From positions 1 to 45,805 of the forward strand of contig NIVC01001627.1 in NCBI GenBank assembly GCA_002269645.1: a stretch of DNA of 45,805 bases, given 5' to 3'. The position numbers were made by a program, and so were the translations under genes. Positions 2,007 through 44,851 of this stretch are shown here, piece after piece (within the stretch, counting starts at the first letter, position 1; every line of letters starts with the position of its first letter). The stretch is from Macrostomum lignano. Lineage: Eukaryota. Under the pieces are notes generated by a model. That model saw nothing but the letters and a program-made list of their open reading frames with translations, was not told the DNA's origin and did not search any database.

Positions 2007-4681
2007 ATGCCTAACACATCGCATGCTGCGCCAGGCGTCACTTCACCAACAATATTCGACAGTGTCGACACTGTCTGTTACAATGGCGGCGGCAATAGCG
2101 GAGGCGTGCTATTCTGCATCGACACCTCAGGCAGCATGCACTCTAAGCTGCCAGCCGTCCGCTCCGAGCTAGTAGAGCTGCTCAACCGATGGTCGGGCAG
2201 TTCGCGCCGATTCAATTTGATCAGATTTGGCGCCGGCTCTCTGCAGCGCTGGTCTGAAGGCATGGTGGACTGCACACCCGCAGCCATTGTCGACGCGGAC
2301 AGATGGCTTTCGATTGGCGGCACGTCCGGTTGCTGCTCCGACACCCGAGCCGCGCTGACCACAGCCTCCGTTGAGGCAAAAAATTGCGGCGCATCGTCCG
2401 TTTGCCTCGTGACAGACAGTTTGCCAGAGGCCACCCTGACATCTTCGGAGATGTCCTCGCTGCCGCTGCCGGTGCACTGCGTCTACCCCAAAGAGTCGGA
2501 GCTGACGCCGCAGCCGGGTTTGATGGCCGAGCTCCAGCAGATTGCCGGCGCTACCGGCGGTTCGTTGACAGTTGCCAACGTCAGCCATCGAGGTGTCATC
2601 GAACGGGTAGCTCCGGTTGCTCGGACGGCTCCGCCAGCGACTCGCTGGGGCCGTCCTGGCGGTCAACAGGTTCCACCTGCCATTAACGGTGGGAAACTCT
2701 GCTCGGTGACAGCTTCGCTGCGCTGCGACCCGCTGCTAGACGCTCCGGCTCTGCTATTCGAAGGCGAGGACAGAGACGGCTGGCGGTTTGTGTATTCAAA
2801 CCAAGGCCCGCCAGGGACTCACTGGGGCGGCAGCTGGAGCAAGTTTCAGGCTAGTCGGCCAAGAGTTCGAGCCGCAGAACGAGGCGCCTCGCCGCCCAGA
2901 TCACCGCCGCCTTCAATTGCTGGAGTCAGCCTGCTGGGACGTCGAGTGTTGGCAAGGAGACGGTCGGACGGACTCTTCTATGAGGGCACCGTCTTATCAG
3001 AGGTGAGCAAATTTTTCCTTAAAAGTCTTTTCTGTCTTCAATAGAGTATCTCTAATACTCTAATTAGAGAAGCTAGAATTTCAGTAGGAAATTTCCTACT
3101 GATACCGATGGGAATCAGTAACGCGCCTGAATCTCGATATTTTAATAAAGAAATTTCTAACTTCGATTTCAGACATACGTCTAAAAAGACGATATCTTAC
3201 GAGAAAAAATGTCTGTAGTTTTAAAACTCGTATAATACGAGAATACTCGTATAACGTGTACATTCATTGCATCCATTACGCAGGCATCAACTCCCGGCCA
3301 ATTCAACGTAGAACTGCAGACAAACAGACCCAAAAACTGTGCTGGAAAAGACGGCTTCTCAGACACCGAGTACCAAATTACTCCGGTTGGCGAGCTTATC
3401 GCCCTGGACGACGCGCTGCGCCGACAACTGCTCCCAGGAGACTGCGTCCTGGCGCCGCGCGGCCCCAACAGACCCGACTATGGGCCTGCAATCGTGCTGG
3501 ACGGCTACGAGCTGCGTCGGAGACAAGCAGCAGCAGGAGATCGCGTCGAAGACCAACCAGACGACAGCGTCGACGACTGCAAAAGCGGGGGTGGCGTGCG
3601 ACCGTTGGCCGTCGCTTTCACGGACGGCGCGAGCTGCGTGGCGGAGCCGGGAAAGGCAGTTCGTATCAGCCACTCGATGTACCACCGACTGCAGCTCGAG
3701 GCCGTCATGCCAAGGCGGGAGCGGCTCGCCCTGGCCGACTGGACGCCCGAGTACCCGGAGGCGACTCGTCCGGGCTATTTGGCTACGCGGCCGCTCAGGA
3801 ATCCAGACGAATTCGAAGCAGTGCGGCCGGTTTGGCCACCAGGTCGCATGCTTCCGGAAGCTGTTCCGGCTCGATCTCACCGCAGCGGAAGCGTTGATGG
3901 CGGCCGGATGCTCTACGACTCGGCAGAATACGACGAGTTCGAACAGTGGCCAGACGATACGGATCGGCGCGCCGACCAGCTGATTGCCGACTTCGACAGG
4001 CGCCTTGTCGACGCCTCTGTGGGACCAGAAGCTCCAGCTGTTAAGTCAAAGAGTCGCACAGCGCCGACAAAGTCGATTCTGAAGAAGCCACCGCCGGCGC
4101 CGTCAAAGCAGCGATCGTTTGCTGTCGGGGCGAGCACCAACTGGGCTTCGGAGAACGGCTTCTCCTGCGGCTACTCGGGCCATCGGCAATCTTCCAGATG
4201 GACGGTGCGTTCGGCCAATATGTACAACCGACGGCCACTTGAGATCGGCTCGTGTCTCGGCCGGGGCGACTTGGAACTCGAGACTCGTCAACATCGAATT
4301 TACGAGCACAGACGCGCCGTGTCGGCGGAACGCGCAGATGCACTGTTGCGCTCTCGAGCAGACGAGGAGTCTGCCAAGGCCGCTCGACTGGCGCGCATGG
4401 CTGAAACTCGCGGCTCCACAGCCGCTGCCGCCGTAAGCGTCGAAGAGACGCCCGACGGTCGATTCGGTGGCCGACGTCGCATTACTGCCACGCCGCCAGA
4501 CGAGCGATCGCGCGAAAGTCGACGCCGCTACGTTACGCCGCCCTCGGTGCCGACAGAGGAGCGGCCCTGCCGGGTGAGGCGAGTCACTCCGTGCGGCGAC
4601 AGAGGCATCCAAGTGGTCGGAGATGGAAGCGGTGGCGGCGGACTGCAGCGAAGCGTTCGGTTCAGCTCATCAGAGCCGTGA
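2007..4681 (+). CDS. vWA domain + DUF4537 (C11orf16/VWA3B-like) protein with a low-complexity C-terminus; exons 2007-3002 and 3284-4681, ~797 aa
   Basis: MIDAS-type vWA start VLFCIDTSGSM...RFNLIRFG...SVCLVTD. Donor GAG|GTGAGC at 3003 and acceptor TACGCAG| at 3283 join in phase 0 to give GRRVLARRRSDGLFYEGTVLSE-ASTPGQFNVE...LLPGDCVLAPRGPNRPDYGPAIVLDGYELR...LAVAFTDG, which matches my recollection of the DUF4537 pattern. An acceptor TTTGCAG (AG at 1991-1992) lies just upstream of the ATG. Confidence 0.8.
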
Positions 4682-4799
4682 GTTGACAATGAAATGGATT
4701 TGTCGCAAATGTCTAAGATCTGCTATAGTATAAGCGCAGTCCGGGGGCGTCATGGACGTCTGTCCGTGAGCAAAGGACTTCTGGAGGGTGTCTTTGTCC

Positions 4800-4935
4800 C
4801 AGCAGCTGAGGACCTACTAGGGTGGCCCAGCAACTGAGGATTTGGAAGGCTGGCACAGCAACTGAGGTTTAGGAGGCTGGCACAGCAACTGAGGATTTGG
4901 GAGGCTGGCCAGGAAACTGAGGATTTGGGAGGGGT
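4800..4935. repeat. ~28-bp minisatellite (CAGCAACTGAGGATTTGGGAGGCTGGCA), 4-5 imperfect copies
   Basis: Direct tandem repeats seen downstream of the vWA gene stop. Confidence 0.85.
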
Positions 4936-4970
4936 GGCTAGTGGCTTGACGAACGTAGCCTTAAAATTTA

Positions 4971-5303
4971 GTGTCCGCGGTGTCTGAAGTTGAAAACTAT
5001 TGTCATTCTACTCATGAGTACCCACTCGCGCTACAACTCGCTTGCAGAACGGTCACCGCCTGGATCAAGCGCCAGGATCACATGACCCCATCGGAGGTGA
5101 GAAGCAGCGCGCAGCAGCTGGCCGCCAGGCACAAAGACTGCGTCGACGGTCTTGAGCGACAAAGATGGTCAGCTGCGGCGGCTTCAAAGGCACCGCCAGC
5201 TTCAAAGACGACGTCAAGCAAAAAGTCCAACTCGTCGAAGTCAAAGTTGACGTCCACTAAGACTTCTTTGAGTTCCGCCTCCACCGCCAAGGCGTCAGCC
5301 TAG
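4971..5303 (+). CDS. Possible orphan terminal exon with a Ser/Lys-rich tail
   Basis: GC-rich open frame after a TTTAG acceptor-like site. No ATG start, and I could not phase it with the GTGAGT donor at 4678. Confidence 0.25.
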   Translation: MSAVSEVENYCHSTHEYPLALQLACRTVTAWIKRQDHMTPSEVRSSAQQLAARHKDCVDGLERQRWSAAAASKAPPASKTTSSKKSNSSKSKLTSTKTSLSSASTAKASA

Positions 5304-7018
5304 ATAGACGTCCATATATTTTGGAATTTAAAGATTGACCCTCTTCGCGAATGGTAACAACGGGTACTTTTACGTTACCCCGACAAGTTACGACGACATT
5401 CATCGACTGACTGTCGGTGTTATATAAAAGTATCCGCTTGGAAGCGACGTCCATTGACGTTGAGTACGTCGGATAGGTTGGCGAATGTCGAACGTATAGC
5501 TACTTAAAGTGTAAGTAACTGCGGTACAGTTTTTGACTCAGATATCGAATTCGTAAGTTTTTTTAATAAACTTTTTTTCTTAAGAATATTTATTCAACTT
5601 ACGTTATAAATGATTTGTTATTTGCACCTATTTTCATTCCACAAACCTTTTATGTACCATTTTACAATGCAAAAAATACACTCTGTTTGATGACTTTCGG
5701 TTTCAAAACTATTATTAAGTTAGTTTATTTAAATTTGTTTGTTTACTTGCTACTCCTCTAGTTCTGAGCTACGGGACAAATGAAAAAACCCAGAAGTACA
5801 TGCATGAACAACCTCTGCAAGAATTTCGATGCAAGTAGGTAAATTTGTCGATTCAAAGTTGTCCGTTTAAGCTAGTAAATATATATTGTAAGTTTGTCTG
5901 AATGCTACATGTTCAAGGACGTGGAACTTTACAATGATATCATTTGGATTTGAGGCAGGCTACTTTTCTTTAATACAACTCGTAAGCCTAGAAAGACAAA
6001 GCCGACAAAAAATTTCTTTTTCGAGGATTTGTGGATATTGATGGCGAATAAAACTAAAACTTTATTTGTACGACATGTTTCGCTGAACATACAGCATCGT
6101 CAGGTAGAATGAAATATGCTCGTATTTGTGAGACCAACAGGTTACCAAAAAGCTAGTATTGGAAAACATTAAAATTACACAGTCGATAGAACTAAAAAAT
6201 TCTGAGGTGCATACTGCTGCCTCTCCCTGCTTCCAGCACCAAAGTATGAAATTTTGATGACTGGATTAGAAGTTATTTTTTCCTTTGCGTACTTTGTTAT
6301 TTCTTATTAAATTTATTGAGCAGGAACTGAAATCTCATTATTCTATCATTAAATCCATTACTGTCATTAGAGTACAAAAAACAATAAAAACAATTGAGTC
6401 TTTAAAAAGCAGCGTCACAGGCGTGCCTCTGAGCCAGGTCGCCAACGAAGGCCACGGGGGCGCCAGCAGCAACCAGCATGTGGGCCTTATATTTTCAACT
6501 TTTGTTAGTCCAGGAGACTGCTGGATTATCAGAAAAAAGCACCATACTTCAAAACCTTGCTATATATGGCTTAAAGAGCGAAAGCAAATTTGAATCTGTG
6601 GAGATGGCTTTAATGATTTAAAAAATTAAATAAAATTGTTAAAATAAAAAACTCAAAAACAAAGACTTAAAATAAAAATATACACGAAGGAGCAAAAAAT
6701 AAGTTTCACATGACAGTAAAAAATGAAAAACATTTATAAGTATTCACACATCGCACTATCGCAAAAGAGCAAAGACAGGCAATATGATAAAAAATTTCTA
6801 CCATTCAATAAGTGCTCAAATGAGTACAGACTAAAAGTGCTTGAGGCCCATAAGTACATAAAATCACGTAAACAAATCCTGAAAAAGCAACTTGTCAATC
6901 GTGGTGTCAGTGCCCTCCTAGAGCACGAGCTCCTCTCGCTCTCTAATTCCATATCTCTTCCTCTTCGTTGCCGCACTCAAGGACGACTAAATTAAGTAAT
7001 AAAGTAAGTCCTTGGCCG

Positions 7019-7420
7019 CACTGTGCACCAAGCCTTTCTCACTAATTGCGACAACTTCTCACTCACAATTCAACTCCTAAGTTACGCAACTAAGCCGCCG
7101 CGAGGAGGGAAAAGTTGACTGAATCAATAATAAACGTCAGTCGCACAAAATCATAAGTTTATTTTTTATACAAAATGCAATTAGAATCGCGATGCTTAAT
7201 AACGCGTGTTATATCCTCTTGCGTGCAGATTGCGGCGACTCTGCAGGGCATCCCCAGGATGAGGCGGCGCAGAAAGTCCTGGGGAAGCTGCTGCCAAGCG
7301 TTTTCAATGGCATGACGCAGCTTCGCAGCATTCTCTAGCGGACTATCTTTTTGAATGCTTAGATAAACACAAGTGGCAATAAGCTTCGCGCTTACCGTAA
7401 ATTGCGTCACTCGCAATAAG
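7019..7420 (-). mobile_element. 3' remnant of a Tc1-family DNA transposon
   Basis: ENAAKLRHAIENAWQQLPQDFLRRLILGMPCRVAAI (~7200-7340) resembles the Tc1 transposase C-terminus. 7019-7100 resembles the TIR of the element at 19868. Confidence 0.65.
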
Positions 7421-7901
7421 TGAGAAAAATTCATCTTCATTGACTGTTGAGTATATATATATAAATACATCGTTTCCAATTCATTAGGAGCCTGACGATG
7501 CCTGTCGCTTAGCCAAAAATTCCAGTGCTCGCATTCTTATTTTTACGATTCTTACTAGAACAGGCGTCAGTGAACAATTTCTCTTGGACAATTCTAAAAT
7601 AAAAAATACAAGAAAACTATCGGGGTAGCTTTATTCCGTCCGATCCTCGCACACCGCTCCCCCCACTTCATTCTGCAACTCAATTCTTCCGCTTGGCGTA
7701 GCTAAGTTGCGTCACTGGCAAAGATCGAGAGACTTAACCTGCACTCTCAAAAGTGGTGACTACAGATGGAATCTGCTATGATGGCGACTTTTCGATGGTG
7801 TTGAGCACAAATTTCATTTACCAGTATACTACAATCTACGTACATTACATCAAGTAAAGTTTACCGATGAATGTTCACGAAAGCAATTTTAGCTGCCGAT
7901 T

Positions 7902-10900
7902 TCAGCAATCTGCTGTGATCTCGCGGACTTTTGATGACTCAGCGCGTTTTTTCTGCTGCTGATATTTCTCCTCCAGCCACTGAGGCACGTCACCGAACAT
8001 CTTCGTGCTTTTTCTCAACAGCAGCCGCAGCAGCTCCACATCTTGGCAATTCGCTGCAGCAACCACCAGCTCCTGCTCGTCTGCATATTCCATGTGAGCC
8101 ACATGCCGGATCCAGCGTTGAGCATCTGAGTCTCCTGTACCCAACAACTCAAAGCGGAGCGCTTGCAGCAGAGCGTCGAAGTTTACAAAGAAGTAGGTGT
8201 TGTAGTTCTCTAATTCGAGGGGGATGTAATTGAGGATCACAGCAGTGCTATCTGAAATCGGTAGCTTAGGCCGCTTGCGAAGCCAAAAGCAGAACTTCCA
8301 CGCGGAGTCTCGGCTCGTCAGGTGCTCCCTCACGAATTCCGTAGTCGCCTCACTCGCCGACCCCTCAGCGGGCCAGTAGATGCCTCTGCTTGCACTGGAC
8401 GGCCCGCAGTCGCTCACGACTTTCGCTGCAGCATCTCGGTCGCCGAACTTCAGGTAGCTCAGCGCTCTGAGAGACTCTCGCGCCGAGCGGGCGCAGTCTG
8501 GCAGCTTGTCGATCAGCTCCGAGAGACGCTGTCGGGACTCTGTGCTTCGGTCTTGGTCCGACACTCCGAGAAGCGACTCTCTCACGATGTCGTAGATCTC
8601 GTGGTACTCGCAGGTCTTCGCCGTTGACACCGGTTTATCAAACTGCATGAGCGGCAGAATGAGGAACGGGTAGAAGTGGAATCGGCCCGAGTCGGTGACG
8701 GGTCGCAGGCTGTCCTCGAACTCCAGCAGCAGCTCAGGCAGCCTATCGATCGCATCTTTCACTGCATCGGCTGCCTCAGTCAACGCTTGAGTCGCCTTCT
8801 CAGCTGATGAGGTGTCCACGCCTCTCAGGTACACAGCGGCATCGCGAAGGAAAAAGTGATCCATGATCCTGGCGTCAGGTCTGCCTGATCTGCAGTCGCT
8901 CTCAAGCATCTGCAGCGAGCGTCTGGTGAGACTCACGAGATTCCGGGGGTCGTTCCACTGCTCAACCGGTGTCTGGTCGAGCATTCGGAACGCGATGGTT
9001 TTTGCGTGATACGACTTGAAGCCGTTGTGCCGGACGGCCTTCTTCAGCAGCCACTTGAGCGTGACGAACAGCTGGCCCTGCAGAGTGCTGACACTCCGCA
9101 GCAGCCGCCTCTCCAGGAAGCTGGTGCTCACTCGGAGCTGCTGGCCTTCTTTTCCGGGAGGCGCTGCGTGCACCACGTGACAGGGCGATAAGGCAGAGGT
9201 GAGATCGTGCTCTAGCAAACGCAAAACGGACTTGGGGATGTTGGAGACTCTGTTGGTGGCAAGTGGCGCGATAGGCGGGTAGCGGCAGAGGCGGCGGGCC
9301 TCAACAATGTCTACAGCCGGTCTCAGGATGGAGCCATTGTACTGAGTAGCTGGCCTGGATGCTGCAAGCGTAGTTTTGCGAGTGTAAAGAGCGTTAAAAA
9401 TAACATTTTTCGTAAATCTCTCTTATAATTTTTTATTCTTTCTAATAATGAAGTTGCCGAAGTTTAGGACGAACTACTGTGTTAATAGCATCTTCCTCCC
9501 GTGTTTTATGGAGCATGCCAATCATTTATTGAGCTATCCTTTATTGCTTTTATTCCTTAGAATGCCGGGTAGGTGAAAAAGCAACTCTCACCGAAACCAG
9601 GGCAGAATACGTGTCCATTGCTGTACTTCAAAGTCTCAGCAGCCGTCTCTTCAGAGCACTCGCACACATCCTTCGCGTGCAACGAGATGCCTCTGTGCAG
9701 CTGCATGGCATCGATGTCGGACTCCACGCCAGTTCTGCCATCCAGCGAGACCAGGCTGTTCCCCCAGCCCTCGGAGAAGCTGCCCACCAAATAATAGTTA
9801 TCTTTCTTTTGCCTTTTCCTCAGAATATCCTGCAGGACATCAGCCACAGCGCTCTGCAAGGCGGCTCTCGAGTCCACGAATCCCGACCGAAAGAGCTTCG
9901 AGTGCAGCTGCTGGCTGAGGTCCGAGTCGCTGATAGGAGCTCTGAATGAAGAGTTTCGTAACTTTTAGTGCATACTATGCGGAAATTTTATTTTGTGAAA
10001 GGGATTAAAGCTATCAATATTATTTTACACTGCATGTGAACCAGGAGCAATCGTCAAGTAAAAATATTTTTGCGGTGGCAGTTGTTACAATTCCTCATTT
10101 TGTTAAAAGTTTGCTGGGCATATAATAGGGTGTAGGGCACATTTGGCTGCCTTATTACGATTTGAGGGGGTTTCATTATTTTGCATTATATATTCATGAT
10201 ATACAGAAAGTTCTCGCGGTTTCCAAAGTTACGGTTTGTAAGCCTACGGCTCGGCTCGTACATAAATTTCTAAAGGCTTCCAGAAGGTTTGGTGTGCAGA
10301 GGTATACAAATGTCTTTGACTGATGCAGAGCAACCCAAATTGAAGTTTCAGCTACTGTGCTACAGTACCATTACATTAACTTTAAGTACTTGATTTCATT
10401 TAAGGCTTCAAAAACCACCAGAACTTTTTGCTTTACCCATTATTTTTCTCGAAACAAAGGAACTTGCAACTTTATGTTAAATAAACTGAATTCAAATGAT
10501 CTCCTTTTCGCAACATAACAGTTCTTGAGTCGAGCACATACCTTTTATTCGGTGGTTGCAGGCTTGCTCCCCGATTGCCATGCAGTGCACGCTGCAAAAT
10601 CTCTACGGATTTTTTGCTACCAAAGTCCCGAGCGCGCTCAAGAGCCGACTGAATCGAATGCTGAGAGTCGTCGATTACTCGTATGTGGGAGCTGAGCAGC
10701 AACTCGACGATGAGATAGTGGTCATTTTGTGAGGCAATGTAGAGAAGCGACTTGCCTGAGCTAATTTCAACATTGACGTGGGGTTGAGCATCAATGAGCA
10801 ATTTAGCTACGAGATGGCGGCCTTGCTGAGCTGCAATGTAAAGAGGCGACTCGCCGGTGTCTCGACGAAGGCTGACGTCGGCTTGCGCTTTGATGAGTGA

Positions 10901-11665
10901 GTCCACTACAAGATGGTGACCGTTACGGGATGCAATGTAGAGAGGTGACTCGCCATTGTCTTGTTGAAGGTTGACGTCGGCTTGTGCTTCAATAAGCGAG
11001 TAGACCACCTTATTACGACCAAAGCGAGATGCAATGAAAAGAGGTGAAGAACCAGTTCTGCGTTGAAGATTGACATCGGCACCTGCTTTGATGAGCGAAT
11101 TGACCACGTCGAGATGACCGTACTGTGATGCGATGTAGATAGGTGCTTCACCAGGCATTCGCTGAAGATTGACGTCGGCCATTTCCTTGATGAGCAAATC
11201 GACTACGATATGATGACCGTTGCAGGATGCAATGTACAGAGGTGAGGCACCAGTTCTTCGTTGAAGATTGACGTTAGCTTCTGCTTGAAGGAGCAGTTGA
11301 ACCACCCGGTAGCAACCAAATTTTGATCCGATGTAGAGAGGCGTCTCACCGTCGTTGTTTTGTAGATCGACGTCAGCTCCAGCTTTGATCAGCGTCCGAA
11401 CCGCCAGATGTTGGCCGTGCTCTGAAGCGAGGTGAAGTGCAGAGGATCCATCGCAGTTTCTCTGGTCGATATTCAAGTTCTCCTGAGCAAGTCTTAGCAA
11501 GATTTTGTCCCTCCCTAAGCAGCTCGCAAGCATAACTAGTGTGATCTCGGATTCATTCCAAGTGTAAAAGGTGTCAATATTGTGTCCACAAGATATGTAA
11601 TTCTCAAGGGCTTGAATTTCGTTGGCTTCAATTGCGGAAATGATTGCAGCATTTTTGGGCTCCAT
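7902..11665 (-). CDS. Ankyrin-repeat / Mab-21 (cGAS-like receptor, cGLR) fusion protein; exons 11665-10542, 9941-9592, 9361-7902, ~977 aa
   Basis: Exon 1 has ~10 canonical 33-aa ankyrin repeats (SPLYIAS.NGH..VV..LI...ADVNL). Donor AG|GTATGT (10541, phase 2) matches acceptor TTCATTCAG| (9942). Exon 2 has YLVGSFSEG...ESDIDAM. Donor G|GTGAGA (9591, phase 1) matches acceptor GCTTGCAG| (9362). Exon 3 has [30 protein letters not shown] and FKSYHAKT...TPVEQW, all Mab-21 family motifs. The frame stays open across both junctions. Confidence 0.85.
10590..11650 (-). repeat. Coding ankyrin array (~10 x 99 bp) of the ANK-cGLR gene
   Basis: 33-aa periodicity in ORF 10472..11665. Confidence 0.92.
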
Positions 11666-12065
11666 TGCAACCTCCTTGATTGGCTCGCCGCTGCTAAAGA
11701 AGGACCAAAATTAGGCAGACAGCCCTGCAATAATTCGCTGCAACAACTTCAATGTCGAAAGGTACCGTGTTGAAATATTGACTAGTTAAAGACCTAGGTC
11801 TGGAGTTCTGCACAAATAAAAAGCAAATTGAGCTGTTCATAAAGTGAAAAGTCGGTCCTTATCTCTCCTTATCTTTAAATGCGAGCTACGTCACAGTGTT
11901 CGCTCACTGTACAACAGACATTTAGCTAATATGGAATGCGGACGCAGATCGAAGAAGACGAATAACATTATAACATTTAGCTCGTAGCTATTACTGTGTT
12001 GGTTTGTGACTGGTCTTGACTAGTCAATAACCAGTTTTAAACCCCTCTCCCTCTGTCCGTGCTGT

Positions 12066-13690
12066 GTGGGGGGGGGGTGCTTGGCTCTGCGTGCGTGGGG
12101 TGGTGGCCTGGTGGGGTGGGCTTTAGCCTCTGCGCCGTCGCCCCTTTTATTGGCGTCTCACTCAGTTGAATCTGCGTTTTTCGGCTGCCTGCATGAGCTC
12201 AATTTTTTTAGCTCTAAGATTTTTTCATCTGGCACCATTTCTGACCTAAACCGGTTAACAGTAGCCCAACTGCGAGTGGCCCTAAGAGACAATGGCCTAC
12301 CGGTTTCGGGAAACAAGCAAGAGCTTGTTGAGCGGCTTCAAGCTGCTCCACCACAGCCAGGCGACGCCGAAGTCCCAGACTATGCAGAAGGGGACGAAGC
12401 AGATACTGCGATAAATCAGCTGCTGAACGGGGAAGAATCGGAGAATATTGACGCCGCCAACAGCCCCCAAGAGAGCCGACTTGACAGCAAAATCCAGCAA
12501 GCTAGGTCGCGGATCGAGCTGCTAGAACTGAAGAAGCGAGAGGCGCAACTCCGGCAGGAAATCGGTCTGCATGCCGCCGCCACAGCTGAAGAGGTCGACC
12601 CGATTTCGGCACTTTTTGGCTCGCTTTCAGCGAAGGCGCGGCCGGCTCGACGCCCTCTGCTCATCCCGAACTTCGTGGATGGCAGACGGGAGCAGATGAC
12701 AGGGCTGACGCATGATCGCGACCGGCGCGCGGCGAAGAGCGGTGCGTCCAGCCTCGACAGCATCAGCACTAGGCAATGGATCGCTGCTAACGCCAGAATA
12801 ATGCAGCAGCTGCTTGAGTCCAACCAGCTCGTATCAAAAGGAAGCGATGGAAGCATCGATGTGCGGCACTTGAAGGCTTACCTCAATTTCAACATACATA
12901 TCGGCTAGCTCATGGAAGCAGACTACGATTGGAATGTCGTCCTACGATACATGCGTCTGTTACAGCACGAGCGGCAGAGACTGGGACAGCCCAGACCTCA
13001 ATCTCATAATCAAGCACATGACCGCGCCTAAGAACCTGCGAAAGACAGGCAGCAAAAAGTCTTCCAGATGAAGCCAAGCAGCACCATGAGGCCAGACGAT
13101 TTGCGGCCTCTTCAACAGCAACCGTGACTGCCAGAAGCAGCCTTGCAACTTCGCACATGTCTGCCGCATCTGTGAGGCTCCGCACCCGGCCCATCAGCAC
13201 CAGCACAACAATGGCTCGGGTCCAAAAAACTGATTGACCTCCGCCTCCCCTGCTGCCTTGCCTGCTCCGTCTTTAACTTCGCCACCCAACTCGCCTACAG
13301 CTTCATTCTTATCCATCTCGCCTCATCCATCATCGGCTACTGCCGCGCCTGGTGGTGCCATTGCTGCCTCCAGATCGTCCAACCCGCCAACCCCGCCCCC
13401 AGCCCAGCTGCCAGCTAAGCCGCCAGCCCAGCTGCCAGCTCAGCCGCCAGCCCAGTCACCGGTATCGACCTGGTCGCTTTCGCCATCAGCTTGGGAGCCT
13501 GTTCTAGCCAACGATCCGGATGCGGAGTTTTTCCGTACTGGCCTGCGCCATGGATTCCTCATCGTCGACAAGCCAGCTCAATCGGCCTCCGAATTCAGCA
13601 ACTACGAATCCGCTCTTTGTGAGGACACCTACCAGCTGGTTGAGTCTCAGATCAGAGAGGAACTTGAGACTGGCTGCTATGTGTGCGCTT
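12066..13690 (+). mobile_element. Degenerate, 3'-truncated DIRS/Ngaro-like (tyrosine-recombinase) retrotransposon: SAP-domain gag plus the start of pol
   Basis: SAP motif DLNRLTVAQLRVALRDNGLPVSGNKQELVERL (~12243-12338). Gag core WIAANARIMQQL...Y..FNIHIG*...DWNVVLRY has a premature stop at 12906 and frameshifts. C-terminal zinc finger ICGLFNSNRDCQKQPCNFAHVCRICEAPHPAHQH ends in PKN* (~13230). Overlapping pol N-terminus WEPVLANDPDAEFFRTGLRHGFLIV...NYESAL...VESQIREELETG. No RT catalytic core or recombinase is present. Confidence 0.75.
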
Positions 13691-14288
13691 CAGAGTTAAG
13701 CTCTTTAAACGCTGTCGTTCGAAAGTGGCAAGTCTCTTCTTTATAATGACTCAACCGCGATTGATTTGAATGTGTATTTTACGAGATATGTGCACTTGAG
13801 TAGAGAGAGATCGGTCATGTATCCCCCACTTGCCCCGGGCGAACGTCTATGGTCTCAGTGTAAACTTCATTTATTTGCATCGGTGCAAATAAACGGTTTC
13901 TTTCACTCGCCCAAAGGGAATATTAAAACGCTGCTTCTAACTGCTCACTTGGCTGCATAGAGAGAGAGAGAATTCAGAGTGCTAGCAAAGTAGCTTTCAT
14001 TGCGCTTTGTACGCACCTCCAGAATGAAACTTTAAAGGAGGTAATTTAGATCTCCTCCTCCTCCTCACGCTGTAGGCACCCTACCGGCGAGGACAGGCGC
14101 GCACTCGGCGTTTCGTCGACTGCCTGCTGGCTGACGCCGGCGCCCCGGACTCTGCCGGCGGAGCGGCCTATGTTCGCACTCTGGCCTTGAGACGCGCCCT
14201 GTGACACTATAGACTATCCAGTGTACTTTGTTGTTGTTGTTGTTAGATCACTCTCCGACAGTTTGCTGATCTCCTTCAAAACCATTAG

Positions 14289-14450
14289 CTAGGATCCACC
14301 TCCAGTGCACCAGGCCGTTTTCTTTGCTTCGTGCCATTCTTTAAACGTTGTAAACATCCAGGTACATTTTTTCAATGTATTTGGTGGAACCATGCCTACG
14401 ATTAGTCCTAGTTCGTCTTCAATCAGATTCACAAATCTATCACCAGCCAT
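14289..14450 (-). mobile_element. Possible Crypton/DUF3504-type tyrosine-recombinase N-terminal fragment
   Basis: MAGDRFVNLIEDELGLIVGMVPPNTLKKCTWMFTTFKEWHEAKK resembles the RF...E.EL......P.NT.K.T.W....F.EW motif of Crypton-derived proteins. Recalled similarity only. Confidence 0.45.
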
Positions 14451-14620
14451 CGCAGTTGATTTTTTTTCAAAACTGAACAAAACCTTTTTCTCTGCATGTA
14501 TATGTAAAGAAACTCTTTCATTCTTTTCCTTCTCTGAGCAACAGCACATTTTGTGGCCATAGACAAAAAACTTCGCATTCACCACTGTCGGAATCTGCAG
14601 AATATGGTATAGAAATACGT

Positions 14621-14702
14621 ATAAGATATTCTATGGCTTTAAGGTCGGTGGCTCGAGGAATTTAAGTGAAATACCGACCTAAAAAGCCATAGAATATCTT
14701 AT
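14621..14702. other. Near-perfect hairpin (29/30-bp arms, 23-nt loop)
   Basis: ATAAGATATTCTATGGCTTTAAGGTCGGT ... ACCGACCTAAAAAGCCATAGAATATCTTAT. Confidence 0.85.
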
Positions 14703-14780
14703 TTAAACTACTTTAATTTTGCGGGCTGTATTCAGATAAATCCTGGAGCCATACTTGTATGTCTATGGTTGAAGTTGGGG

Positions 14781-14852
14781 CTGGGGGTGTGGGGGCGAAG
14801 CCCCTGCTGGGGGTGTGGGGGCGAAGCCCCTGCTGGGGGTGTGGGGGCGAAG
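14781..14852. repeat. 26-bp G-rich tandem repeat (CTGGGGGTGTGGGGGCGAAGCCCCTG) x ~3
   Basis: Direct tandem repeat. Each complete unit contains a GGGGC-GAA-GCCCC mini-hairpin. Confidence 0.9.
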
Positions 14853-16599
14853 CCGCTACATTCTTACCATAGAAAAAATTTCATTAAGAAATTTCCCGAG
14901 TCACGAAGAAGAGAAGAGAGAAGCTCGCTTATTTAGATACATACAATGTATGATTATCGAGAGGTCACGCTTCACACACAATAATCCTTGCAATATGTCC
15001 GGGAAAGTGATCGATTAAATCCCGCAAAACAAAATCTATGTCAATAACCTACCTGAAAGTGAGCTTTAAAGTGGTTTAAAGAAGCTTAAACACGAGCGTA
15101 ACTGCTAAAATTAGCATTCTGCTCAATGACGAATCGATATTTTTGCATGCATGTAGTTGTTTTGTGGTCAAATATGGCACAGTGAAGAGTTTTCTCAAAA
15201 GAATACGGCTGCACCAGTTGTGTCAAAATTTTTTCACTGTTGCTCAAGTTTGATCCACCAATTGTCAAATGGACATGCATTCAAAGACGGTAGCGACATG
15301 CCATCTTTACACTTTAGAGCTCCGGATGCAAAGCAGCTGACATTCACAAGCAACTCTGAACTGCGCAAGGCGACCATTCCGTTAGCACGATGACAGTGAA
15401 CAGTGGGTGAACGACTTCAGGGGTGGAAGAGCTGACATGAACTGGAACTGAACTGACTGAAGGTCAGGACGCTCTGAGATCCATGTCAGTGGCGGCCTCG
15501 TCTCGGATCCATTTTCGACTTGATTGATGAAGACAGCCATCAAAGCATCCGCGAAATAGCCGATAGACGATGATTGCTTGAAGTTCACAGTTTACAAGTG
15601 TCTGCAGAAGATGATCCATGCCAAGAGTGCCCGTTGGGTTCCCTGACGGCTCACTGAGGACATGAAACTGTATCGTCTGTACAGAAGGCTTGTGTCTAGG
15701 CTCTGTAAGTCTATGACCGATCTCCCTCTATTCAAGTGCACATATCTCTTAAAATACAAATCCAGATCAATCGCGGTTGAAGTCATTATAAAGAATAGAC
15801 TTGCCGCTTTCAAACGACACCAAATTTATGTCAATGCAGCTTACCAAACGTCCGCAACAAGTAAAAGTAACACTACTTTCCGGACACCCCTCGTAATTGA
15901 GCAATTAAGAATCAGGATCAATCAACACAACGACCGCGCGCTTATTTTTTTATAATTGGATCACAACACAAATTACCTTATGATCGATAAGTTTCGTTAC
16001 ACAAAGAATATTTGTTTGTATAGACGTTTAATTATACTAGAGTAGTAAGAAAACTGCTCGCTTTATTAAAACTTGTAAATTAGTAAAACGGCCCTTTTTA
16101 AAGGGCCCCTTTGTCACACACTGACGCGACGCAGACAAGGCTTGTTTAATTTGAACAATAAAGCAGCGAACTGATATATTTGCTGAGTAAATATTACAAC
16201 GAAGAAAAGCTAGATTCAGTTATTTAAATACGTAGTGGTATAAAACGATATTTGAGTTATTGATAAAAGTTAGATTTGAAAGTACGCTATGTGCGCATTG
16301 ATGTACGCATGAGTGGGGTGGACGCTAGGCATGGTAAGCAGGGCACAAAATGAGTCAGTTTAATATCTAGCCAGTCAATAGTCAGCGACAACCCCCCAAC
16401 ACGTCACACACAACATTTGCTATTCGTCCATGTTGACAGTTTCCCATCATTTTGCTATTCTGATGTAACCACGCTCTGGTCGCGGGATAGGGCATGGGAA
16501 CTTTTTCGAAAGTGCCTCCTATCCCGTGTACCCTCTGCACAGAGCTGTCGAGACTCGGCCAGGTCTCCGCCCAGGCCTGGAGACTCCCGCTCTGCTGCC

Positions 16600-17200
16600 C
16601 CCCCTCCTGCTGCCTTGGTTCCGTCTCCCCTGCCGCCACACCTGCCTTTCCGGAACTCCCTGTCCCTCTCTGTACCCTCCCCTCTACCTTATCTCCCCTG
16701 CACTCCACCCTATTCTTCTTGTACTTTCCCTTTCCCCCCTCTTTTTGTCTCTCTCTGCACTCTTTTCCTGCGCTGTCCCCTCCTTCTCTGTGTCTACTTA
16801 CAGTATTTTGTGTGCTCACCGTCTCCCCATCCCCTCCCAAACTCCCAAACGGTGACGCAAGTCGTGTGACCCCTTCTTCCCCCCGATGACTCATCGATGA
16901 CTCATCTCCCTCTCTTGCGCAACCTTTTCTCATGCCATTGTTCTCCTCCCCAAATTTCTCATGCGACACCCACCCCACCTCCGCTTCTATTGTTCTCGTT
17001 TTTGATTCTTTTGTTCTCTCGACCCCACCAATTATCGCATTTTCTCCGATTTTCTCTTTCTTTTGTTCTCGTTTTCGCACCTAATTATCACCTTTTCTCC
17101 AATGTTTACTTTTCCATTGTTCTCAGTTTTCCCCAATTATCCCCGATTTCCAATTCCTTTGTTCTCGACCCCAGCCCTATTGTTCTCAATGTTTGCGTGC
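16600..17200. repeat. Pyrimidine (CT)-rich low-complexity tract
   Basis: Strong C/T strand skew; the overlapping ORFs in several frames are compositional artefacts. Confidence 0.7.
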
Positions 17201-17309
17201 GCAACACTTTCGCGACCACCCGCTGCGCCAATTATTCCCCCACCCCACCTCCGGATTGCGCAATTTCCCTATTTCTCATGTTGCTATGCCGGTCTCATGC
17301 TTCTCATCA

Positions 17310-17717
17310 TGACTCATTCTGACGTCATTCTGCCGGCAGCCAATCAGAGAGAGGGAGCCATGGTAACGACCTTGAGGAGGCGGCTGTGAGGTCTATAAAA
17401 GGAAGCGATTTCGGCATGAGAATCCTCAACTTTTCGCCTCTTTGGGCTTGCCGTCAGACTGAGTTCTGACCCATTCGTCTATAAGACGAATCCCTGCCGG
17501 TCCGCGGTCTGTTACCGCCAAGTTATCCTTAGCTCCCCAAGTGAGCTCGCCTATCGGCCAGCGGTCTGATACCGCCCAGCATCATCAGCATCGCCTGATC
17601 TACATCAGCGCCTCGTCGCTCCAGCGCATCGCCGCTTCACTGTCTGCCTGACTGCAGCCTACAGCCACCCTCGGTCACTCCGCCTCTCTCTCTCTCTCTG
17701 TGCAGCTGCCGGTAAGT
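17310..17717 (+). promoter_or_regulatory. Pol II promoter-like cluster with a first-exon splice donor (probably retroelement-derived)
   Basis: TGACTCA 17310, TGACGTCA 17320, CCAAT 17340, X-box-like CCATGGTAAC ~17358, TATAAAA 17394, and donor CG|GTAAGT 17712. Confidence 0.5.
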
Positions 17718-19359
17718 TCCTGTTACTAATTTGTGCTCTAATTGCCTTTGCTTATCCGGGGTTTGCCTATTTTCCATTGTCTGATTAGAGAGCTGAGCCA
17801 ATTGTGATACCGTATCTTTTGCTGTATTCTACTCAATAGTGAAGCCGCCTAATTGCCTGATTATTCGCCTAAGAGCCTAATTATTAACTAATAACTAACT
17901 TCATCATTATTCAATCTTTCACCATCATTTAACTCATGGCTTGCTAAGCCTTTCTCCCGGGGTGGCAAAGCATAAGGGAGTTTGGGTAAGCTAATGGCCT
18001 CTCCCCGTGCAAAGCCCGCCTGTGAGTGCGTGCTGCGGGGCCGCGTGTTCGTGTAGTAGAGGGGTTAGCGAGTCTTGGCACAGAATGGCAGTAGGAAGGT
18101 TGCACCCCCATGCTAACGCGTCCCTTCGCCCTGAGCAATCTAAACTGGAGACAGTACATGTTCGCCTCATACTACTCTTAGTAATTAAAGTCGCAAGTCA
18201 GCCTCGCTCACAGCCACAAAGGATCCCCTGCTGAGAAATCCTCCAGGATTGAGCCCAGAGTTCCCGATCATGCCCCAAGCAGAGTCCCTGTACTCGGCTG
18301 CATGCGTCTCCCCTGTTAGCCTAAATCCCCTGGTAACCAATCCAGGCGGGGCTCTAGCCTCGAGAGGTCTGGTAGAAAGATCCAGGTGCGCCAGGTCACA
18401 TAGAGTGGTGGCAGCCACTCGGTCATACCATGACCGAGTGACCAACTATTGCACCTTGGCTACAGGTGGGGTCCATGTGGGTCCTTGGCCCTCTGGTCAC
18501 GAAGCGCTACCAAAAGCTACTAATCATGTGGGCGGGACAGTCTGGTGCTGGAGGTCCGTCAGGTCGTTGCCCGGTCATAGGCAGCCTACGGTCATTGCCC
18601 CCTCTAGTCATGCGTTCGTCTCTCTACGGAGCGGACAGGCGACAAGGGCGGTTACATCAATTCTTCATTTTAGCGGTAATGCCAACCTCACTATAAACTG
18701 TGTCCCCGACTATAGTCTCGAGATGATTTAGTCTGGGCGATTGCTGGCTGCCTATGCCCATGCAGCTCTGTGCGGGCTCCACTACTGTCTATATTTTTGC
18801 TAACTTGTAGAACTTAAAGATCTGAGTTTGACCTCTTGATTAGACTTCGGTCCAAGGATCCCATGTTCCAGGAAACGAATTCCAACCATGCTTTCAACAT
18901 TGGCTACACAAAAGAAAATGTGTGGCGGTGCTTCGCTGTGTTCCAAGGCCAACTAGCTCGTAATATTCTTTGAAGCATTGTGGGATCGTTGCATATTTTG
19001 TTGATTTCTACTGCGTGAGCATCTATGGACCTTGTCGTGTTAAGATGAAATCCCAGGGTTCTACAAGCTGACCCAGCGGGAACAGCTGTTTTTTTTCTCC
19101 CTGAATAGTACTGCATACCTGAATTGAGGAATTGTATTTTGTTAGCAAAGTAATTTTTTCAAGTTATTTCACTTCAAGACGACTCATCAGATTTTTTTCA
19201 AGCATCGGAACGCGACCATGTATTTAAAGAGGGTTTTAAAACAATTTAAACGATCAACTTTGACCTTGAAATTAGGTTCCAGACTATAATGCTCCAACGA
19301 AACGGTTACTCTTCAGCCTATATCCCCCACCACAATATCCACAAATTCATTTCTGAAAG

Positions 19360-19860
19360 ACTGCTGTGTTGACCAGATCAACTGCTCTGTTGACCAGAGC
19401 GTCTCCTACGTACGTGGGGAAGACCAAAAGACACCTGCACACTAGAACCATGGAGCACTGGCTCAAACCGTCGGCCATCCAAACCCACTTTTTGGAATGT
19501 AACAGCTGCTCCAATTGTACACCTGAAGAACGCTTTAAAATCATCGATAAATGCCCATCTGATCACAAGCTCAAGATCTTAGAAGCCTTGTACATAAAAA
19601 ACCAGTCGCCCACCCTTAATACGCAACTCCAACATTGGTGCAGGCCATTTTCTCCGTGTATTCTGAGTGAGAGAGCACTGACCATGTTGTAACCAGTGCT
19701 CATTCAATTATATTTTGTTTTCTGCTCACTGGTCTTCGCCCCGCCCTACAGACTATCAACCTCCAACTACTTTGTACATACAAAATACTTACTCACCAGC
19801 TACATATGTTTCATTGACAAATAGTTTATAAATTCGCTTACTCACACCTTTCGTTTCAAA
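19360..19860 (+). mobile_element. Penelope-like retroelement 3' fragment (GIY-YIG endonuclease)
   Basis: YVGKTKRHLHTRTMEHWLKPSAIQTHFLECNSC...RFKIIDKCPSDHKLKILEALYIKNQSPTLNTQ in ORF 19366..19692 is the typical PLE GIY-YIG C-terminus. Confidence 0.85.
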
Positions 19861-19867
19861 CAATATA

Positions 19868-20467
19868 CACTCAGCAACAGTCAAAACCGCCACCCTACCG
19901 AGAGAGGCGACTTCTCTCTCACCTCAACTGCAAGTGACGTAGCTTGCGCCACGGCGTGGCTAAAGCTGGGTGAGAGTGAATTCCAGGGTGAGAGTACAAA
20001 AGGAACTGGGGTTGGGGTTGGGGGGTGCAACAGTACACGTGACAATGGTCAGGCATATGACAGACGCTGAACGATGCCGCACTGTTGGCATGCTAGAAGC
20101 TGGTGCATCCATCAGCGCAGTTGCGCCAATTTGGCCGATCACGTTCAACAATTCGAGCGCTGTTAACGAAGTGTCAAGATACTGGTAGTGTTCAGCACGC
20201 AGCCATAGGCAGCCAGCGTCATGATCTCCGCGGCTCAACAGCCAGGGCAAATCGACGTCTGCTGCGGATTTTCAGGCGAACTTCGACCGCGCCAGCCACC
20301 CTGCTCCGTCTAAGATGGGGCATCCCCTGCATCCCCTGATTGCCCTCTCCTGCATTCACTCTCACCCAGCTTTATCCACGCCGTGGCGCAAGTTACGTCA
20401 CTTGCCGTTGAGGTGAGAGAGAAGTCGCCTCTCTCGGTAGGGTGGCGGTTTTGACTGTTGCTGAGTG
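19868..20467 (+). mobile_element. 600-bp non-autonomous Tc1-type transposon with 113-bp TIRs, TA target-site duplication and a transposase N-terminal remnant
   Basis: TA|CACTCAGCAACAGTCAAAACC... (19868-19980) and its near-perfect inverse (20355-20467)|TA. Internal MVRHMTDAERCRTVGMLEAGASISAVA/QFGRSRSTIRALLTKCQDTGSV is a frameshifted paired-like HTH. Confidence 0.92.
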
Positions 20468-21156
20468 TACCTGACGATGCACCTTGGTGTGCGAAACGCG
20501 TCGTACAGTAACAACCTGACATGTTGATTTTCGGCTTTCCCTTCGAACAAAAACACTGACAACAAATTCAACTTAACGAATTGTGACACCTAATCCCGAT
20601 GTATTTTGGCTGAATAAATAGAAGAATAAATATTGGAACACAGCAGACAATAAATAAAGTATTGGCTAAGCACTCCATGACCCGGTCAAGTCTCAAATTG
20701 TAAATTAATCAATTTTGGCGTGACAGAAAAAAACAATATAATATTGGACAATAGACGGGTAAACAGGTAAGTGGAGGCGTTACGCTCACAAGGACTACCA
20801 ATAAGTTACCATTGTATCAGGACGTAAAACTCGTAAATAGTGCAGAAATATTTGAAGGCACGCTTGTTTACGTACGCGTATTTTTAGTGATGCTTGCCTT
20901 CTATTTGACTGCTTTAGGGAAACCTACGCTAGCTTGTGCCACAGAAACTCCAAGACAGGTGGTGTATTTATGATTGCCTAAGGCTTTAACCTGACTAATC
21001 TATGTATTAAACATTATATACACAGCGGCGACTTCTAGTGGTCCTTGTGCGCAAACTGAAAACAGACCGTCAAGCCTTCAGTACAAACTATAACAAAGTA
21101 AAATTATACGATGAAGAAAAACACAGAAGCTAACGTAAATTGTAGAAAAAAACAGA

Positions 21157-21331
21157 AGTTAAGGGACATTGTTGAAAAAACAGTGCAGTTGAGGGACATT
21201 GTAAGAAAGTACACATCAGTTAAGGGACATTGTAGGAAAGTACACAGCAGTTAAGGGACATTGTAGGAAAGTACACAGCAGTTAAGGGACATTGTAGGAA
21301 AGTACACAGCAAATAAGGAAATTGTCGGAAA
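21157..21331. repeat. 31-bp minisatellite (AGTTAAGGGACATTGTAGGAAAGTACACAGC), ~6 copies
   Basis: Direct tandem repeat. The paralogous region at ~37740-37845 has only ~3 degenerate copies. Confidence 0.9.
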
Positions 21332-22244
21332 AACACGACAGCCAAAGCCCGGTTTACTACGCCATCAAACGAGACCAATTTTTGCGAAATCACACTGCTT
21401 GTAATTTTCTCGTAGCACTATGTACCCCAATAATGCAATTTGATGGCTGATTTGATGGCGCTCTGAACAAGCCTGAGTAAAATGAGGCTGCGACAGGACA
21501 GACGCAGATAGATTGGGAAATTTACATACAGATATTCTGCATGCGAAAACCATGGTAGCGTGGAGTTGGGTTAAAAGTAGGAAAATCTTTTTTATGGAAT
21601 ATAGTAGTGGGTTCCGTCTAATCAATACCCATCAAAGCCCAATGAGTACTTCTGCTCAAGCTGTCAAATTTTTAATATTTTCCAGAAATTAAAACAAAGC
21701 AAGTTTAGAGAAAAAGCGAAAGTGACGCGTGAAGAAATAAAATATCATAAATAATTATTTTAGAGGCAGGTGCAGGAGGTGGTGTGCCAAGAGTTAACAG
21801 AGGTCTTTGTTATTAGTCACTCCTGTTAAGTCCATTTAAGTCCGCGACCCCTTAGTTGTAATCCTGACTCCATTAACCCTCTACGAAAAATGAAGCTAGT
21901 CCAGTCAATGGGATTAATTAGGAAGTTGCTTGCATTTTAATCATTTTCAATACCCAAAGAATCAGATTCCAATTCTATGCATTGAGTCTCGCGGAACCAC
22001 GAATGTTTTTATTTAAATAGCGTTTAAATTCAAGTTAAAGATGAATCAGTAACCGAATTTAGACAATCCAGTGAAATGTCGGTGTCTTCAGTGTCATCAA
22101 AACAACCAAATAAAACTCTGAGCAGGAGCTCGGGTCAGGCTTGATCCGCTCAGCTCATCCTGCTGTCTGAATCGAAACTCTGAAATTTTTCAGTCGAAGT
22201 TGCAGTTGGGAAATTTGGAATTAAGTCTAATTAGCTAATGAGCC

Positions 22245-22301
22245 GCGCCTGCGCCCCCCGCGGCGCCTGCGCCCCCCGTCAGTAGTAAGTAAGTAAGTAA
22301 G
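22245..22301 (+). mobile_element. 57-bp 5'-truncated non-LTR/SINE insertion with a (TAAG)n tail
   Basis: Flanked by a 13-bp direct repeat TAGCTAATGAGCC (22232-22244, 22302-22314). Absent at the paralogous site near 38545. Confidence 0.8.
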
Positions 22302-22378
22302 TAGCTAATGAGCCCCTATGTCAAGTTCAAGATAAATACTGGGTATTTAATCACTGGAGATATACGGCCGACTTACGC

Positions 22379-28217: not shown

Positions 28218-29389
28218 TAGGAGCGTCTGGCACAGCTGCTGTGAATTCTCCTGGCTGTAAAACAGTAATCGGTTTTTTAGATTTAGGCTAACAAAATAAT
28301 ACGTGAGCAGGAAAAACTTACGTCAAATATACAATGTAGAACCTAGTAAAAGTAGTGTGGAGGCGTTTATTTTCCCCTGTAGGTACAAAAAGACTTACGG
28401 ACATTTCCTCTCAGGCATTTCCCTTTTTGGCATCACCCTCTCGACAGTAGTATGGTGTAGTAGAGAGAGATGGATATTGGAGTTGCAGTGGCCGTGAGTT
28501 CAACTCACGACTTATAGCGTAGAGAAATGAACTTTAGCTACTACAAGCTGAGACTTTCATAAATACTTCACTTTATAACACGGTTCATTGTCAAAATAAA
28601 AAATTATAATTTTTTTTTCAAATAAAATGTACAATAACCTTATAGGGGTGTACATTAAATCAGCAAGTAGAGCTGCAAACCGGATCCCATTCTTGTCAAA
28701 GTGGACGTCAACAAAGCACCTAAAGGATTCCTGCAGTATTGTGTTCGTTTACGTTTCAACTACTCGTAAATTATCCCAACGATTGATTTTCAAATTTGAT
28801 ACAGTCTATGTGCTATTGGTAAAGTAGGCTAAGTATTTTAAAACAAAGTTCCAATGCTTCACTACCATTCACAAGAAAACATCACCATGCATATAACGTT
28901 TTAAGGACCATAGCTAATATTAATACTATTCTCTCGGGACTAACTTTGCACTTTATAGCGCAAAGCCTTTGGCGACATGGTTCCAACAACCAGCACAGAG
29001 GCAATTCTGCACATTCCGCTGACTCAAGCTCGCCAAGACTGTACGCAACTGGGCACTCGTACACACGCTCACACAGGGTGTACAGGCTGGCCCTGAATTT
29101 CTAAGCGCCAAGGGGCTGTACACTTTCTGCGCCTTGTGCATTTTGTGCTCCAGAAACAGAGTTGTTTACCGCTGAGCTGCTCTACCGGCCCCTAACCACA
29201 GGTGAAGATCCTGACTACACCGTCTGCTATCGATAAATTGCCGAAAAACGCCATGTAATCCCATGCAAGTTAAGTCGGTTGATTGAAGCATCTCAAACTT
29301 TTGACAGGCATCTATAAGCACATTGTGAGGATGTGAATCTTATGAGGATCCGGAATGTTTAGATGATCTACTAGAGGGCAAGCCTGATG

Positions 29390-29580
29390 CGGCCTTCTGA
29401 ACTGCTGCGCGAGCGGCGACACTTCGACTGGCTGGCCACGTCATGTGGTCGAAAGCTGCGGCGGGGAGCCGCTGAATTGACGTGCTGCTGCTTCCAGCGG
29501 CAGGGACCGCGTAGGCAAGGCCAAGGGCGAACGGCTCGCTACATTGACAGATTCATAAAGGAGGACGCTAGCGCCCATGA
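29390..29580 (+). mobile_element. RTE-like non-LTR retrotransposon 3' remnant
   Basis: Frameshifted ELLRERR.LRLAGHVM...DVLLL...R..GQGR...YID, resembling the post-RT C-terminus of RTE-clade elements. Confidence 0.5.
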
Positions 29581-44600: not shown

Positions 44601-44851
44601 TTTAGCAGCTGGGTGTTGGAAGTGACTACTGTCATAAACAGCAATGCTTTCGCTTGTATATCATTCTGATCCTCAATGCACTCTTTTAATGTCTTTGCTA
44701 TTCTGTTCTGCTCTTCAATTTCGTCATTCTGGCAAGCTTTGAGCAATTCCCTGTGCCATGCTCTGCACTGGCTGTCTGCGTCGCTCCAGATGGATTCGAA
44801 ATCAAATTCATACTGTCCAAACTCGTTTAAGTCGAAGTCCTCATCATCCAT
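38631..44851 (-). CDS. Ankyrin-array TRPM-like cation channel, paralog B; exons 44851-39113 and 38924-38631, ~2010 aa
   Basis: Same architecture as paralog A, with 12 di-ankyrin units. Donor AAG|GTGAGC at 39112 and acceptor CTTTAG| at 38925 (phase 0, same position as in A). First ATG (MDDEDF) at 44851; the listed ORF start at 44935 is a GTG. Confidence 0.9.
41870..44430 (-). repeat. Coding tandem array of 12 x ~219-bp (73-aa) di-ankyrin units in paralog B
   Basis: Twelve (R/Q)T/S(I/L)LH..A.N...P..L.W motifs counted in the translation. Confidence 0.92.

Follow-up and report, generated by a model that had tools for sequence, protein, structure and literature searches.

Macrostomum lignano is an established laboratory flatworm model. 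One contig of its genome (NIVC01001627.1, assembly GCA_002269645.1), 45,805 nucleotides long and referred to below in its whole length as the window, carries on its minus strand, at 7902-11665, a gene predicted to encode a cGAS-like receptor (cGLR) with an N-terminal array of ankyrin repeats. A sequence-only reading of this stretch had proposed that three separate open reading frames (ORFs) are spliced into one ankyrin-cGAS-like fusion with an intact metal-binding triad; the core of that predicted arrangement is supported by the comparisons described below.

Gene model and appended domains

The three ORFs were found where the reading had placed them on the minus strand, at 10472-11665 (397 aa, with an ATG), 9557-9877 (106 aa), and 7902-9224 (440 aa). 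Exon 1 (10542-11665, 1124 nt, with the start codon at 11665-11663) encodes residues 1-375, including the first two bases of codon 375, and contains, according to ORF and Pfam evidence, the ankyrin domain and a linker. It is followed by intron 1 (9942-10541, 600 nt) and by exon 2 (9592-9941, 350 nt), which encodes residues 375-492 with the N-terminal spine helices, the Gly-Ser motif, and the Asp-x-Asp motif. After intron 2 (9362-9591, 230 nt), exon 3 (7902-9361, 1460 nt) encodes residues 492-977, that is, the rest of the nucleotidyltransferase (NTase) core, the Mab-21_C helical lobe, and a C-terminal domain, and ends with the stop codon at 7904-7902. Both introns are of the GT-AG type, with the junctions AAAAG/GTATGT ... 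TTCATTCAG/A for the first and TTTCG/GTGAGA ... CTTGCAG/C for the second, and the spliced sequence of 2934 nt contains 977 codons and no internal stop. The GC content is 0.36 in each intron and 0.49-0.58 in the exons; this contrast between AT-rich introns and GC-rich exons is what genuine introns would show.

Twelve M. lignano homologues align colinearly with the spliced protein and run across both exon junctions with no gap. The locus of the closest homologue (M. lignano contig NIVC01001606.1, L001 hereafter) has the same three-exon layout, namely, an ankyrin exon, an exon of ~122 aa (12190-12555 and 26619-26984, both equivalent to exon 2), and a large terminal exon. Intron 2 of L001 has the same position and phase as that of the window gene (GGATACG/GTGAGA ... 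ATTGCAG/CATCCAGG), and, at the resolution of tblastn, its intron 1 falls at the same protein position. Exon 3 is 85% identical in nucleotide sequence to the exon of an M. lignano paralogue, and the introns show no similarity. The exon joins are not due to chance, given the gap-free colinearity with 12 homologues and the layout shared with L001. The predicted gene model, in which two phase-compatible introns bring the three ORFs into a single frame of 977 aa, is thus confirmed at the level of splice sites, open frame, and homologue colinearity.

An arrangement of separate genes in place of a single spliced one was rejected, and no second copy of the ankyrin-cGLR gene was found in the window. 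Upstream of the start codon (11665), at a distance of ~35 nt, there is a pyrimidine-rich tract ending in AG (ccttctttag/CAG, ~11695-11705, minus strand), which could be the acceptor of an intron in the 5' untranslated region or a site of spliced-leader trans-splicing.

Residues 1-345 constitute the ankyrin domain (Pfam Ank_2, E = 3.7e-70; Ank, E = 1.1e-47). Eight regular repeats of 33 aa, delimited on the basis of repeat register, per-column variability, and Pfam, occupy residues 72-335 (10661-11452, minus strand); about two degenerate capping repeats (residues 1-71) precede them and a C-terminal cap helix follows them, such that the total is ~10 repeats. The repeat dipeptides on which the sequence-only reading drew (EH, KF, CN, QY, RF, RN, QQ, and QN) and the hairpins QRRTG, QRMPG, and RRDTG are indeed present in the eight regular repeats from residue 72, but the properties attributed to them fare less well. 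The proposal that the array binds a polyanion is not supported and is weakly contradicted by its net acidic character (pI, the isoelectric point, of 5.75, with 28 Lys and Arg residues versus 38 Asp and Glu residues). Nor are the hairpin Arg residues, to which the reading attached importance, peculiar to this gene, QR being the commonest dipeptide at its position across the repeats of the family (23 of 105). Finally, the variation is not confined to the concave face, since the helix-2 surface positions 19, 23, and 25 vary too.

Two tandem M. lignano copies differ by ~495 nt in the ankyrin exon, which corresponds to roughly five 99-nt repeats; therefore, the length of the array changes quickly. 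The repeat number is ~10 in the window protein, ~6 in the paralogue P0001, and ~15 in the paralogue P0006.

The architecture put forward by the sequence-only reading, an ankyrin array followed by a cGAS-like enzyme, is right about both modules but overlooked a third part. This is a family-specific C-terminal domain of 262 aa (residues 716-977; 7905-8690, minus strand), which, according to AlphaFold2, Foldseek, and the family alignment, is mostly helical with a small sheet. Its AlphaFold2 model, based on the window's own sequence, has a predicted local distance difference test (pLDDT) score of 84.6 and a predicted template-modelling (pTM) score of 0.85, and a Foldseek search of the PDB revealed no significant structural relative (best E = 0.35). 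The domain is conserved in the paralogues, with invariant columns throughout the family alignment. The UniRef name of one fragment, P0013, would make this domain a 'Terpenoid synthase'; nothing supports this assignment, which looks like an automatic label.

The enzyme core and its active site

The cGAS/Mab-21-like NTase core corresponds to residues 376-715 (8691-9941, minus strand, a span that includes intron 2), as delimited by Foldseek, hhalign, and a profile search of the PDB. A single-sequence phmmer search of PDB sequences was marginal (E = 0.005); with a family profile, the same sequences yielded cGAS (E = 2e-5) and Drosophila cGLR1 (E = 0.0025). When the family core was compared by hhalign with an alignment of six cGAS and cGLR sequences drawn from Table S3 of Li et al., the probability was 97.5% and the E-value 7.3e-12 over 282 columns, which is nearly the whole of the cGAS catalytic domain; against a single cGAS sequence, the C-terminal half alone was aligned, with a probability of 66%. 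The fold was modelled by AlphaFold2 on P0001, which is 75% identical to the window protein, with the window's exon peptides among the alignment rows (pLDDT 87.5, pTM 0.89). The best 50 Foldseek matches listed for this model in the PDB comprise cGAS, one entry of Crassostrea virginica cGLR1, and two chains of MAB21L1, with E-values down to 2e-6, a probability of 1.0, and target-normalised TM-scores of 0.42-0.58. The profile-profile alignment and the structural search thus agree on the cGAS/Mab-21 fold that had been proposed.

The active site can be followed residue by residue in the hhalign alignment with human cGAS. G428 and S429 (LVGS, in VGSFSEG; codons at 9779-9784, minus strand, as for those that follow) correspond to G212 and S213, and D450-I451-D452 (in ESDIDAM; 9710-9718) correspond to E225-F226-D227, which include the metal ligands; both motifs are at least 90% conserved in the family. 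The third catalytic acid, D509 (PAVDIV; 9309-9311), corresponds to D319 and is invariant in 13 sequences. R568-V-S570-T571 (LRVSTS; 9123-9134), in which R, S, and T are invariant, corresponds to WRLSFS of cGAS (R376, S378), a type of motif (RxSxS) that we take, from cGAS structures, to be a nucleotide contact. Across 12 paralogues of only 33-75% identity, the catalytic positions are invariant or at least 90% conserved, and, in the P0001 model, they fall where they should in the secondary structure, namely, at the turn between strand and helix, on strand 2, and on a later strand. The metal-binding triad, which had been said to look intact, is predicted to be so both from its alignment with E225, D227, and D319 and from its conservation in the paralogues.

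The zinc thumb of cGAS (H-x5-CC-x6-C) is absent from the hhalign alignment, where a gap of 12 residues lies opposite EKTCCESSGAKCC; consequently, the protein is not a cGAS orthologue. The family has, moreover, an insertion of nine residues, GNSLVSLDG, between the Gly-Ser motif and the strand with the DxD motif (strand 2). Other residues conserved in the family are H463, C468, C470, and H485 (H-x4-C-x-C ... NGH; 9611-9679, minus strand), along with the invariant C517 and C552-H553 (9177-9287, minus strand). These His/Cys clusters could bind zinc at one or two sites and so stand in for the absent thumb.

The core is mildly basic in the window protein (pI 8.5); since the pI ranges from 6.1 to 9.0 among the paralogues, this property argues neither for nor against the sensing of nucleic acids. 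The ratio of nonsynonymous to synonymous substitution rates (dN/dS) with respect to an M. lignano paralogue is 0.35 for the part of the core in exon 3 and 0.44 for both exon 2 and the C-terminal domain. These values reveal moderate purifying selection, unlike those of a pseudogene.

The family, its relatives, and the rest of the window

A search with the 602-aa non-ankyrin part of the protein gave 39 homologues, all from M. lignano, of which the best are 75-80% identical and 26 have ankyrin Pfam domains; the exact window protein is absent from the protein collection searched. A family profile run against 1.84 billion representative proteins matched, at E < 1e-30, at least 88 clusters (50% identity). 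Those strong clusters whose names were looked up were all from M. lignano, and an annelid protein (1e-21) was the first match from outside; the profile also reached Mab-21 proteins with C-terminal TPRs (E ~1e-13 to 1e-16). Two markers of the Macrostomum expansion, the GWGNSL..LDG insertion and the C-terminal domain, are both present in the window protein. By these searches, the window gene belongs to a very large, Macrostomum-specific expansion of ankyrin-cGLRs, which Li et al. already list as predicted cGLRs. Within it, the gene would be a diverged paralogue or, in the case of a sister species or subgenome, an orthologue. L001 contains two complete copies of the closest paralogue in tandem (10001-15161 and 23935-29442) and a truncated copy on the reverse strand (4775-5856), and the annotated gene model there spans both tandem copies (10001-29445).

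Fusions of this kind have been recorded before. Li et al. (2023, PMC9980059) listed ankyrin-repeat fusions among the minority cGLR architectures (Fig. 1C, Fig. S2A, and Table S2), recorded Ank_2 for six M. lignano members of their cGLR set (Table S2), and cloned five M. lignano proteins for a biochemical screen (PAA86972.1, PAA45980.1, PAA57558.1, PAA93208.1, and PAA68676.1; samples 89-93, cGLR-89 to -93, Table S3), in the form of constructs that begin at the enzyme domain without the ankyrin array. Their identity to the window protein is 28-37% (E = 1e-42 to 1e-65), which places all five in the same family. The caution in the sequence-only reading that ankyrin-fused cGLRs might already be known was well placed, as both the architecture and the Macrostomum family appear in that paper. 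Since the fusion and the family are already catalogued, novelty is low and the value of the present analysis is incremental; its addition to the reading is the C-terminal domain of 262 aa, which is conserved and matches no solved structure in the PDB.

The M. lignano ankyrin-cGLRs already known (cGLR-89 to -93, along with P0001 and P0002, which are BOX15_Mlig030176g1 and BOX15_Mlig022307g1) have the same order of ankyrin array, core, and C-terminal domain as the window protein and share its motifs GSFxEGWG, SDIDx, PxxD, and LRVSTS. P0001, whose locus is L001 with its three-exon layout, has a core that is 75% identical. The difference lies in the array, which in the window protein has its own repeat number and sequence. 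In a different phylum, the ankyrin- and death-domain-fused cGLRs of Stylophora pistillata (Li et al. 2023, PMC9980059, Fig. 4C) likewise combine a cGLR core with a repeat or interaction module in a lineage-specific radiation, as judged from their published description; the fusions of Stylophora and Macrostomum may have arisen independently.

Among the best structural matches is C. virginica Cv-cGLR1 (PDB 8gjw), which is experimentally active, whereas activity of the window protein is a prediction; bivalve sequences of the screen share its version of the active site, GSxxEG...SDxDxM (PMC9980059). Lophotrochozoan cGLRs and Mab-21/TPR proteins have a C-terminal TPR or no appendage, in contrast to the N-terminal ankyrin array found here. 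Vertebrate cGAS has the fold, the catalytic triad, and the RxSxS motif in common with the window protein but differs in its sequence (~15% identity), in its possession of a zinc thumb used for DNA binding, and in its lack of both the ankyrin array and the C-terminal domain. Inactive proteins of the Mab21L1/2/3 type have an incomplete active site, whereas that of the window protein is complete and conserved.

Elsewhere in the window, two large, tandem, paralogous genes lie on the minus strand at 22719-28217 and 39026-44935, each a single ORF, of 1832 and 1969 aa, respectively. Each contains ~10-12 copies of an ankyrin-containing unit of ~99 aa followed by a C-terminal Pfam Ion_trans domain, and they look like TRP-type channels; their best database match, an M. 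lignano protein, covers half the query and is 93% identical there. Head-to-head with the ankyrin-cGLR gene, and ~400 bp from its start codon, there is a plus-strand ORF (12066-12908) with a SAP domain (PF02037, E = 3e-13); another ORF, at 13234-13746, may represent an additional exon or a piece of a mobile element. A short minus-strand ORF just downstream of the cGLR stop (7159-7479) bears a resemblance, judged by eye, to the C-terminal end of a Tc1/mariner transposase and has no Pfam match. In a GC-rich block, a plus-strand ORF (2007-3044) has a weak, sub-threshold similarity to von Willebrand factor A-like domains (VWA_3, E = 0.002). An AT-rich stretch on the minus strand (31508-32539) contains four to five copies of a tandem repeat with a unit of ~57 aa (171 bp), which is probably a satellite or minisatellite rather than a gene.

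Proposed function of the protein and rival explanations

We consider it probable that the locus is a single three-exon Macrostomum gene that encodes a 977-aa cGLR composed of ~10 ankyrin repeats, an NTase core with a complete active site, and a family-specific 262-aa C-terminal domain. By analogy with other cGLRs, such a protein would probably be inactive in its resting state. On encountering its ligand, it would convert two nucleoside triphosphates into a nucleotide second messenger, cyclic or linear, and this would in turn activate a receptor downstream. Ligand binding, partner binding, or regulation would likely fall to the ankyrin array and the C-terminal domain, and the ligand may well be something other than double-stranded DNA or RNA. 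The array may be the sensor or autoinhibitory module that the sequence-only reading proposed.

Several observations weigh against this interpretation. In Pfam, the ankyrin models alone pass on the spliced protein: Mab-21 (PF03281) has no match and Mab-21_C (PF20266) reaches 13.1 bits (E = 0.11), as compared with a cut-off of 24.1. The Pfam Mab-21 models are too distant from this divergent clade; PF20266 is precomputed on many of the paralogues, and distant matches of the family profile pass the Mab-21_C cut-off, most of them passing that of Mab-21 also. The evidence for the fold of the core comes from a modelled paralogue that is 75% identical and not from the window protein, the gene model is predicted from genomic sequence, and catalysis by any member of the Macrostomum family is likewise a prediction. 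Li et al. flagged the 15 active enzymes that they selected in a 'Note' field, which is empty for all five M. lignano proteins of their screen, and they describe the active set as originating in insects, anemones, molluscs, hydras, and corals (PMC9980059). A search for papers on how STING or cGLRs function in Macrostomum or flatworms yielded nothing relevant beyond Li et al., and no downstream receptor such as STING was identified in Macrostomum. The negative evidence from the screen is, nevertheless, weak because the ankyrin part was absent, the ligands were only nucleic acids, and many cGLRs are apparently inactive in vitro according to the authors (PMC9980059).

The silence of the screen is also open to another explanation, namely, that the cGAS fold has become a scaffold or adaptor and is not a signalling enzyme, a role already suggested for MAB21L1/2 or MiD49/51; the ankyrin and C-terminal modules would then bind proteins. 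This would fit with the presence of MAB21L1 among the structural matches, with the fact that in vitro activity has been shown for none of the family members, and with the two large modules of the interaction type that flank the core. We regard it as unlikely: the Gly-Ser, DxD, third Asp, and RxS residues are kept in relatives down to 33% identity, which is hard to explain without catalysis, and the active site is complete, whereas inactive Mab-21 proteins have an incomplete one according to Li et al. (PMC9980059). Granted that the NTase is active, its chemistry could be different, with the production of OAS-like linear 2'-5' oligonucleotides or the nucleotidylation of a partner, protein or RNA, that the ankyrin array or the C-terminal domain binds. 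The catalytic residues are common to the whole Pol-beta-like superfamily, the zinc thumb is absent, GNSLVSLDG is inserted, and the product is not predictable from sequence. Against this, the structural and profile matches listed are cGAS, cGLR, and MAB21L1, with no OAS, poly(A) polymerase, or other transferase among them, and the nearest relatives sampled outside Macrostomum are Mab-21-domain proteins, some of them fused to TPRs; a different chemistry is, in our estimation, improbable.

That the locus might be a decaying duplicate, and the gene model the remnant of a gene, is suggested by the very size of the family, with its tandem duplicates and partial copies such as the truncated one at L001, by the absence of the exact protein from the collection, and by a dN/dS of ~0.4, which indicates only moderate constraint. 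It is very hard to reconcile, however, with 977 codons that are free of stops and frameshifts, with consensus splice sites at both introns, with the retention of all the catalytic and family-invariant residues, and with a dN/dS clearly below 1 in every segment; there is very little chance that this is a pseudogene.

A bolder proposal is that the Macrostomum family constitutes a diversified repertoire of receptors. The variable array and the C-terminal domain would recognise ligands that are not nucleic acids (such as pathogen proteins or modified self), as do the leucine-rich repeats of NLRs; this would release the enzyme, and its signal would be read by a receptor other than canonical STING. 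Such a repertoire is a speculative idea, and we doubt it at present; it is kept open by the ~495-nt difference between ankyrin exons, by the at least 88 clusters of the family, and by the fact that constructs without the ankyrin array were not flagged as active with nucleic acids.

Macrostomum has a very large expansion of ankyrin-fused cGLRs, although cGLR signalling has been lost in most flatworms (Li et al. 2023, PMC9980059). The full-length gene model, which includes both the array and the C-terminal domain, offers a practical start for asking how appended domains control a cGLR.

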